From assembly GCA_033442325.1 (NCBI GenBank), contig JAWQFM010000002.1, positions 2,135,349 through 2,199,348 of the forward strand: a DNA stretch of 64,000 bases, in the 5' to 3' direction. Shown here piece after piece: positions 56,701 through 59,700 of the stretch. The notes below the pieces were generated by a model. The model was given only the letters and a program-made list of their open reading frames with translations, searched no databases and was not told where the DNA came from. The stretch's first letter is position 1, and each line of letters opens with the position of its first letter. The position numbers and the translations under genes were made by a program. Origin of the DNA: Salpingoeca rosetta. Lineage: Eukaryota > Protista > Choanoflagellata.

Positions 56701-59700
56701 GGCGGCCCGGGCCAGGACGGCGAAGCGCTGCTGCCGCTGTACTGCCTGTTCTGGGCGGTGGACACAGCAGGGCAGGCACCGACGCTCATGTGCGACCCGC
56801 GCACGTCCATGTGCGTTTCGCAAGCAATGTTCACCACCCGCGACCACACACAGGTGCAGTGCTTCATCCCCTCGTTCATCTCCATCGACCCGAACACGCA
56901 GGCGCTGGCTGTCACGGTGGAGACCCTTCCTGTTCTCATTCGCGACTGCAGCCTTGACCTTGACCCCAGGGCGCCTGGCCTCACGCGACCCTCCTCCTAC
57001 TTCACGGAGGGCGAGTACGCGCTGTCTGTGGACCGTGCGGACGAGTGTGTGGCGTCGGACTGCCCGTTTGAGGCTGCTCCCGAGTCGCCGTGCATCTCGC
57101 CATCGTGCAGCGTCGTCAGCGAGGATGGCACGGTCGACAGCGGCTGCTGCCGGCTTGTTGATCGATACTGCAACCTGGCAACGAGACCCGACTTTGCGTG
57201 CTCGTGTGCGTCTGTTGCAGACATTGGCTGCCCGTACACGCCGTGCTTTGCGCCCGTTATTGGCGGCACGCCGCTGCTCCGGCTCAACAGCACCAACGCC
57301 ACCACCACGATTACGGCAACCGTGGATGATGGTACCAACACCACCACGTCCACGCTCATCTCCTCGGCCACTGCGCTCTGCAATCAGGGCATTGGCTCTG
57401 TGGTGGTGTACTTTGATGCGGCCTTTGAACTTGTGGCGTCAGCCCGCAATAAGCACATGTTCGTGACTGCACTCATCGTCACCGTTGAGAGCAAGGGCAT
57501 TCCTTCCGACACCATTTCCTGCGTCCACGTCGGCCGGGGTCAGTATTACGTGTGTGTGTGTGTGTGTGTGTGTGTGTGTGTGTGTGTGTGTGTGTGTGTG
57601 TGTGTGTGTGTGTGTGTGTGTGTGTGTTTGGGTGATTGCCGCTGTACGTCTGTCTGTCTTCGATTGCCTCTGTGCCTGCGCGTGTCTTAACCTGTGCCCC
57701 ACTCGCCTCGGTTTGGTTTTTCTCATGCGACTGCTTATCCCTTCCTCCCTGCTTGCCCCTCACTCGCCCCCCTCTCGTCTGCAAACGTGCATGCTGGCAC
57801 ACAGGCCGCCGCGAAACCATTGCAGCCACGGTGTTCTTCACCAACGAGACGAGCCAGGCGGTCATGCAGCAAGCTGTCGACAACAACGAGGTGGCCTTCT
57901 CCCTCGGCGGCCACGAGTACACGGGCCAGAGCACGGAGCCCTCAGCAAGCCAGGCAGTGCCGGCCGCAAGCGTGGGCGCTGGTGTTGGCGTGTTTGTTGC
58001 CCTGGTGCTGCTTGTCGCCCTGATGGTGAAGCGGAGAAAGCAGCAGAAGCGCCGGCACAGCTCCATGTACGTGCAGCGCGAGCTAAGGGGTGACGGGTAC
58101 GATGGCGACAATGACCATGGCGACCACGCTGGCAACGCCGCCTTTAATGACGGCCTTGACGATGGACAGCCGGCAACCAAACGTGCGCACGCAGAGGCCC
58201 CGGCACCGGCACCAGCAGCATTTGTCGCACCGCCCTGGGTCGAGGACGACTCTCCGTTTACGGACGACATTGAGATGCAACACATGGGCTTGACCATGGT
58301 GCAGCAACAGCAGCAGCAGCAGCAGCAAGCACAGCACGACGCTGAAGCGTCGAACAAGCTGGCCGAGTCCATCATGAAAGGCATCGGCATGTCCTCACAG
58401 CCCATGTGGATGCCCGAGGACGAGGCGGTGTTCCACAGCAACAGCAGCGGTCGCATATCCCCCACAACGGCCGGCGCACACGCGCAGGGCCACCGCCTGG
58501 CGGGCAGCGCGGACAGCGGCGACCCGGATGCCGATCTCACGCTGCCGGAGGGCACGGACCTGGCGGAGCTGCTGCTTGGCAGTGACGGGTCGCCTGCACC
58601 ACCGAACGTGATGCTCGATGACGCTTTCTTTGAGGACGCCAACGATGCTGCCGCTCCTGCTGACAGCGACCACCCGAGCGCGGGTCTCGACTTTGATGAC
58701 ATGCAGCAGGGGCAGCGGGAACAGGAGCAGGAGCAGGCGTCCCCAGCCACCGACACGTCGGCCGTGACAATGCTGGACACGATGCTTGCCTCACACACGC
58801 CATCGTCCCGCACGCAGACGCCGACGGGCTCAACTGGGGTGAGCAACAAGGCTGCGTCGTCATCCATCAACCAGACCCCTTCCCCCGCGCTCTCCTCGCA
58901 ACTGCACGAGCAGGAAATGGAGGAACTGGACCCAGCGGCAGCAAACTTTGCGCCCGGCACGACCATGGCAACGGCCTCTGTGCTGAATGCAATGGATGCG
59001 CTGTGGTCGTCGCTGGCGCCGGCTGACGAGCTGTTGCCTGCAAGCACGCTGCTTGCTGCTCCCGTGGCCGCGGCATTGTACAGCCAGCGACAATCAGGAA
59101 CACAGCAGCAGCATGCCCCAACCGATGCGCCCAACTCGCAGCCGTTCCAGGGCATGCAGCAGGCCGCCAGCACACTTGGCTTTGGAGGCCGCAGGCTTTC
59201 GGAGGAGTCATCGTTTGGCTTCCCAACGGGTGGGCCGTTCAACAACAGTGGGACGGGGCTACCAGCAACGCCGCTGGCACCGTCAGCAGCGCCGGTGCCG
59301 ACCGACATGTCCATGCACGGCGCGCCGCTCGCACCATCATCCTCGCTGTTTGATGTGTCCAGCGCCCTTGATGCCGGCAGTGGTGGCAGTGGAGATGTTC
59401 TTGGCAGTGCCGATGCGGCGTGGTACATCACATCGGTGCGTGCGCATGAAGTGTGCACGGCAATGAGCACAACGCCCCTGCATGTAGCCGCTGCCGTTGG
59501 CGACAGGGTGGCTGTGCGTGCGATGGTGGCTGCGCTGCAGGACGGTGTGCGCAACCGCCACGTCAGCAGCAGTCGCAACAGCAGCTACCGTGGCAGTCGC
59601 AACAGCAGCTACCGTGGCAGTCGCTTTGGGAGCACCGGGCGCAGGCGGAGCGGCGCGGGCATCACTGGCAGCGCCAGCAGCACCAGCAACGATGGCGGTA

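Follow-up and report, generated by a model that had tools for sequence, protein, structure and literature searches.

The receptor gene and its domains

The window, a 64,000-nucleotide stretch of the Salpingoeca rosetta genome, contains on its plus strand a receptor gene that extends from approximately 50737 to 61466 (Table 1). A large ectodomain is followed by a stalk, a small module whose coding sequence is split by an intron, a single transmembrane (TM) helix and a long tail. A basic segment that follows a TM helix marks the cytoplasmic side of the membrane (positive-inside rule); the stretch KRRKQQKRR therefore places the C-terminus of the receptor in the cytoplasm. The best solved relatives of the ankyrin repeats in the tail are ankyrin-1/2, NOMPC, TRPA1 and DARPins, not Notch. 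The bZIP_1 match at the C-terminal end scores 24.9 bits where the family cut-off is 27.6, and the top solved matches of this region are CREB and Jun, with E values of 0.1-0.5.

Table 1. Features of the receptor gene, in positions of the window
Feature	Position	Strand	Basis or remark
Cys-rich and TIG-like ectodomain exons	N-terminal part of the receptor gene	+	
Probable first exon	50716-51270		very basic N-terminus RKRRRARRR, then signal-peptide-like hydrophobic stretch MWMLIVAVLLLSTTPAQA
Thr/Asn-rich stalk with N-X-S/T sequons, NSTNATTTITATVDDGTNTTTSTLISSATAL	57286-57378	+	translation; directly N-terminal to the module
End of exon 3, N-terminal half of the module (predicted strand 1, helix 1, strand 2)	57391-57538	+	
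Literal GSVVV	57394-57408	+	N-terminal edge of predicted strand 1
RGRR codons, part 1 (Arg 57535-57537 and base 1 of Gly)	57535-57538	+	
Intron, phase 1, GT-AG, 266 bases, (GT)39 at 57550-57627	57539-57804	+	in the predicted strand 2-3 loop
RGRR codons, part 2 (bases 2-3 of Gly, Arg, Arg)	57805-57812	+	
C-terminal half of the module (predicted strand 3, helix 2, strand 4)	57813-57923	+	
N-E-T sequon	57843-57851	+	in the C-terminal half
16-residue linker from module to membrane, GQSTEPSASQAVPAAS	57924-57971	+	translation
Single TM helix, VGAGVGVFVALVLLVALMV	57972-58028	+	Pfam TM_ErbB1-like, E 1.5e-4, below the family cut-off
Basic stop-transfer segment KRRKQQKRR	58029-58055	+	translation; positive-inside rule
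Ankyrin repeats, cytoplasmic	60084-60806	+	Pfam Ank_2, 4.2e-33
bZIP-like basic region and zipper, C-terminal	61287-61448	+	Pfam bZIP_1, E 2.2e-5

No copy of the protein was found in the protein libraries, either by a word search with exon 4, whose only match was a generic ankyrin protein, or by an exhaustive HMMER search with exon 3, and the same searches disclosed no orthologue of the segment that encodes the module. Other S. rosetta proteins are present in these libraries; it is possible that the receptor gene lacks an annotation or that its model falls outside the length limits of the search. In the S. rosetta genome no paralogue of either half of the module was found; the search returned TM-like noise only.

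The introns of the gene are filled with microsatellites, at 55345-55640 and at 57550-57627, the former being a tetranucleotide run whose in-frame reading gives ACLL over and over. The open reading frames 53323-55344 and 55345-57690 are in a common frame with one stop between them, inside an intron. A poly-Thr coding run occupies 55809-55961. At 55809-55838 contigs of run X1 deviate by added or changed letters, a sign of variable repeat length or of an ambiguous assembly. Downstream of the receptor gene, on the opposite strand (62061-63839), lies a 592-residue open frame with a poly-Gln run.

Assembly of a convertase motif by splicing

Exon 3 ends with ...GIGSVVVYFDAAFELVASARNKHMFVTALIVTVESKGIPSDTISCVHVGR and the first base of a Gly codon at 57538. 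Exon 4, beginning at 57805, completes the Gly codon and continues with RRETIAATVFFTNETSQAVMQQAVDNNEVAFSLGGHEYT, followed by the linker and the TM helix. An earlier note, made from the DNA letters, had proposed that splicing of 57538 to 57805 creates the tetrapeptide RGRR in a loop between two predicted strands of a membrane-adjacent module. Transcript contigs from two independent studies (X4 record 4, X8 record 9) join the exons as predicted. In these contigs 57537 adjoins 57804; as the bases on either side are both G, this is equivalent to the junction 57538/57805. Over 57619-57719 the raw stranded RNA reads of X21 had a depth of 0, and they covered the exons 6-13x, on the plus strand. From the contig junctions and the empty intron it follows that the mature mRNA encodes HVG-R-G-R-R-ETIA. 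The location of RGRR between two predicted strands of the membrane-adjacent module was also borne out.

RGRR is situated 53 residues ahead of the TM helix and hence N-terminal to it, on the lumenal or extracellular side, where a convertase substrate of the type R-X-[K/R]-R would have to expose its site. Across the 1,345 residues of the ectodomain that were examined, R-X-[KR]-R occurs nowhere else except as an RFRR at the very beginning of ORF 53323, which is probably intronic and not coding. With Arg at 3.8% and Lys at 0.7% of these residues, composition alone would yield about 0.09 motifs of this type. N-glycosylation sequons flank RGRR. As a motif near the membrane and between two predicted strands, it conforms to the consensus of a Notch-type furin S1 site, with the predicted cut after 57812, before Glu. 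The S1 site of Notch1 reads GRQRR/E, to which the GRGRR/E of the window is close.

The enzymes that such a site would call for are encoded by S. rosetta. Four loci of the genome have a proprotein-convertase P domain, and one of them, L002, encodes Peptidase_S8 together with P_proprotein, that is, a furin/kexin-type convertase. The genome also encodes presenilin and ADAM-like metalloproteases. Nicastrin gave no match in an exon-wise genome scan, in which the control also gave no match.

Predicted fold of the membrane-adjacent module

Directly after the stalk the composition shifts sharply from Thr/Asn-rich to an alternating hydrophobic pattern. The exon boundary nearly coincides with the proposed cleavage site, and the two exon-encoded halves approximate the predicted cleavage products. 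The halves (57379-57537 and 57807-57950) were modelled as two chains with ESMFold2 in three runs and with 3 controls. The ipSAE was 0.49 in all three runs compared with 0.00 for the best of the 3 controls; in the calibration of this score 51 of 78 solved complexes and 2 of 108 mismatched pairs attained the mark, and values of 0.60 or less were obtained for 5 of the 78 solved complexes. In the co-folds the pLDDT was 75 for the N-terminal and 74 for the C-terminal half, compared with 32-47 in the controls in which either half had been swapped, and agreement between the contacts was at least 97%. These values give weak support to co-folding of the exon-encoded halves.

Pfam searches at E≤1 did not reveal SEA (PF01390) in 57250-57537 or in 57807-57950. 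Within the module there was no Pfam match to SEA, NOD, NODP or LNR, nor any Pfam match to either half, and in the ectodomain exons EGF, LNR, NOD and NODP were likewise absent at E≤1. The earlier note had seen no clear LNR repeats, which agrees with this result. It had also designated the segment a SEA/Notch-HD-like domain. Of this designation the membrane-adjacent, two-exon module that weakly co-folds has stood, and a relationship in sequence to SEA, NOD or NODP has not. Judged by sequence, the receptor is a member of neither the Notch family nor the Pfam SEA family, and it at most works like these proteins. The module is probably a convertase-cleavable, SEA-like unit adjacent to the membrane; the fold of the window's copy, its cleavage and all downstream steps we infer.

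A juxtamembrane module in related choanoflagellate receptors

The exhaustive search with exon 3 led to giant type I receptors that have a repeated TIG-like ectodomain module in common with the receptor of the window (E down to 6e-31). They come from Hartaetosiga balthica, Salpingoeca urceolata, another transcript assembly and S. rosetta. The assembly to which the window belongs encodes, at 100% identity, P0009, a protein known from S. rosetta (NCBI 'protease inhibitor'), and this confirms the species of the window. In all related receptors that were read to their ends, a module of 120-160 residues directly precedes the TM helix. The set of modules, which also takes in those of another two S. 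rosetta proteins and of another three copies in the genome, consists of P0002, P0004, P0005, P0009 and P0010 and of L006:1711-2085, L007:1696-2172 and L008:988-1347 (minus strand). No description of this juxtamembrane family, designated A5, was found, and it is apparently undescribed. Its receptors are giant type I proteins that contain Cys-rich modules, TIG repeats and Kunitz, tyrosinase and Kazal domains.

The annotated S. rosetta proteins P0003 (PTSG_06042), P0006 (PTSG_12385) and P0009 are located on one 1.52-Mb contig, end or start abruptly and have near-identical stretches in common. They resemble pieces or tandem copies of genes for giant receptors, so that the public annotation may be fragmented there. 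The C-terminus of the P0010 type occurs in two near-identical inverted copies about 11 kb apart, G000:C7:251160-251900(+) and G000:C7:262991-263884(-).

The elements of the family module follow each other in the same order as those predicted for the window's segment (alignments A2, A5). AlphaFold2 yielded a pLDDT of 62.9 and a pTM of 0.54 with 5 sequences and a pLDDT of 73.7 and a pTM of 0.65 with 8 sequences. Both models display strand-helix-strand, a disordered loop, and again strand-helix-strand. The loop between strands 2 and 3 is the low-confidence part of both models and, being predicted as disordered, should be exposed. The positionally equivalent modules of the family are predicted to be ferredoxin/SEA-like. 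The top match of the predicted fold is the MAD12 domain of PCDH15. A Foldseek search against the PDB gave no match at E≤0.001 and returned generic ferredoxin-like entries only. Look-alikes proposed by a protein language model were leads below 0.9 only, among them a SEA cluster at 0.80, and the nearest shapes in the ESM Atlas were protist clusters without a name (TM score 0.69-0.74).

In 7 of the 8 family modules the strand 2-3 loop is polybasic; the exception is the P0010/L008 lineage. The loops contain VGRGRRA in P0009, ARRRRA in L006, GRHRRA in L007, SRRRD in P0002, NRRRT in P0004 and RRFRRA in P0005. Since only 1-3 such basic motifs occur per approximately 2,000 ectodomain residues of these receptors, chance does not account for finding them again and again in one ten-residue loop. 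Position, element order and the basic loop are common to the window's module and the A5 family (alignments A3, A4), and HVGRGRRE of the window has at the same place the same VGRGRR string as P0009.

This resemblance was not accompanied by a detectable relationship in sequence. The probability assigned by hhalign to the family profiles against each half of the window's module was less than 1%, also with an extended profile, in comparisons run with and without the upstream Cys-rich part of the family module. BLASTP of the family module against each half produced no match. An intron position common to P0009 was considered and is ruled out, as the C-terminus of P0009 is encoded in one open frame. 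With neither a profile link nor an intron in P0009, the relation is therefore treated either as analogy or as a homology too distant to be detected. The window's module resembles the A5 module in its choanoflagellate origin, in the TIG-like ectodomain modules of its receptor and in its place before the TM helix; it differs in being approximately 20 residues shorter and split by an intron. The A5 receptors, unlike that of the window, have short tails without ankyrin repeats or bZIP.

Comparison with cleaved receptors of animals and choanoflagellates

In human GPR126 and Notch2 furin cuts the SEA fold in its strand 2-3 loop, and in MUC1 the same loop is cut by autoproteolysis (PMC6954182). The cleaved halves remain associated until they are pulled apart (PMC6954182). 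Notch is the protein to which the receptor has been likened: its HD assumes a SEA-like fold beside a single TM helix, furin cuts it in the strand 2-3 loop (PMC6954182), and the cytoplasmic part contains ankyrin repeats. The receptor differs from Notch in that it is devoid of EGF, LNR, NOD and NODP, in that its ankyrin repeats are generic and not of the Notch type, and in that its tail ends in a bZIP-like DNA-binding region of its own, whereas Notch relies on RAM/CSL binding. It does not display the order of domains by which choanoflagellate Notch is recognized (EGF, Notch, TM, Ank; PMC6040629). According to this definition S. rosetta has no intact Notch, and NOD and NODP were not detected in choanoflagellates (PMC6040629).

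The SEA domains of MUC1, MUC16 and Sema-FN1 are juxtamembrane, follow a Ser/Thr-rich stalk and have the same order of secondary-structure elements as is predicted for the window's module. Sema-FN1 is itself a choanoflagellate protein, with a self-cleaving juxtamembrane SEA domain after a mucin-like Ser/Thr stalk (PMC8011033). For canonical SEA domains a role as breaking point or force sensor has been proposed (PMC8011033). They are autoproteolysed at G/S[VI]VV in the strand 2-3 turn, whereas the turn of the window's module reads GRGRRE and GSVVV is found elsewhere. GPR126 (ADGRG6; zebrafish structure 6V55) is a more remote parallel: its SEA domain is not adjacent to the membrane but followed by HormR and GAIN, the protein is a 7TM receptor, and sequence similarity to the window's module is lacking, so that the likeness concerns a fold that we infer for the window's copy.

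Proposed mechanism and alternative explanations

The segments 57391-57538 and 57805-57923 would together form one small ferredoxin/SEA-like alpha/beta module of the order strand-helix-strand-loop-strand-helix-strand, with the intron in the exposed strand 2-3 loop. As the intron lies within this loop, the only convertase consensus of the ectodomain, RGRR followed by Glu, exists only in spliced mRNA. A furin/kexin-type proprotein convertase would cut after RGRR in the secretory pathway, and the halves, joined through one beta-sheet, would stay paired as a non-covalent heterodimer in the manner of Notch S1 and human GPR126. That a SEA-like, membrane-adjacent module is cut by such a convertase in its exposed loop and persists as a heterodimer is the most likely of the readings, though we put its chance slightly below even. 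Loss of the Cys-rich/TIG ectodomain by force or by ligand binding would leave a stub of 53 residues, which could become the substrate of further shedding and of intramembrane cleavage that frees the ankyrin-bZIP tail. This release, modelled on the example of Notch, is an attractive idea, but we regard it as unlikely.

Alternatively, the module could have a SEA-like or MAD-like fold and serve next to the membrane as a spacer that is not cleaved, with RGRR incidental or masked by a nearby N-glycan or by packing. Folds of this kind without a basic site are known from zebrafish Gpr126 (PMC6954182) and are encountered in the P0010/L008 lineage; PCDH15 MAD12, to which the family module is closest, is an uncleaved membrane-adjacent domain; and neither an orthologue nor a paralogue was found that could show conservation of RGRR. 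However, RGRR is the sole consensus motif of an ectodomain poor in basic residues, it occurs at the position and within the very VGRGRR string found in P0009, a paralogous-type module of S. rosetta, and the family models predict a disordered and hence exposed loop, all of which makes an uncleaved spacer somewhat unlikely. Still less probable is that no discrete domain exists and that the segment is a part of the glycosylated stalk with some strand propensity, in which RGRR and GSVVV are chance strings. That the window's segment matches no family at all and that the two-chain score gives weak support would fit such a stalk; the pLDDT of about 75 that the halves attain together and not with unrelated partners, the sharp shift in composition where the Thr/Asn stalk gives way to alternating hydrophobic residues and the equivalent module at the same place in related receptors argue against it.

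A further alternative assigns the decisive role to GSVVV. The earlier note had recorded this motif as literally present but away from its usual position, and indeed it opens predicted strand 1 and does not lie in the strand 2-3 turn. Were it a true SEA autoproteolysis site, 57394-57538 would be the C-terminal half of the domain (strand 3, helix 2, strand 4) and the N-terminal half would be located upstream. Strand-helix-strand after GSVVV is the order of a canonical SEA C-terminal half, and in choanoflagellate Sema-FN1 G/S[VI]VV adjoins the membrane (PMC8011033). The motif is also present elsewhere in S. rosetta: a genome-wide scan with PF01390 revealed one canonical SEA locus, on another contig, with PG/SVVV in the strand 2-3 turn. 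That scan did not select the window, however, and Pfam SEA did not match 57250-57537. The 55 residues upstream of GSVVV are Thr/Asn-rich glycosylated stalk without an amphipathic helix, and the segment after it co-folds with the exon-4 half to a full six-element unit that needs no upstream part. We therefore consider autoproteolysis at this site very improbable; GSVVV is probably coincidental.

Possible implications for the evolution of cleavage-gated signaling

The preferred reading, convertase cleavage of a SEA-like module, describes a kind of device that is known in animals. New are a receptor with its own DNA-binding tail, the recurrence across choanoflagellate receptors and the assembly of the site by splicing. 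In its widest form the proposal would amount to a pre-metazoan switch, analogous but not homologous to Notch, in which a cleaved SEA-like module common to many choanoflagellate receptors lets the loss of the ectodomain license intramembrane cleavage and an ankyrin-bZIP fragment enter the nucleus; this is a doubtful proposition, at the same low level as the release of the tail.

SEA-type modules that are cut by furin or by themselves are the force-sensitive latch of Notch, of mucins and of some adhesion GPCRs. Because S. rosetta has no intact Notch (PMC6040629), the question arises whether the logic of this latch predates animals. In the receptor a candidate latch is linked to a tail that contains ankyrin repeats and a bZIP-like region. 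With such a receptor in a species amenable to genetic manipulation, the idea of cleavage-gated signaling from the membrane to the nucleus becomes directly testable in the closest relatives of animals. Independently of the gene in the window, a basic loop conserved in the juxtamembrane module of several giant receptors of choanoflagellates would represent a new recurring element of the cell surface.
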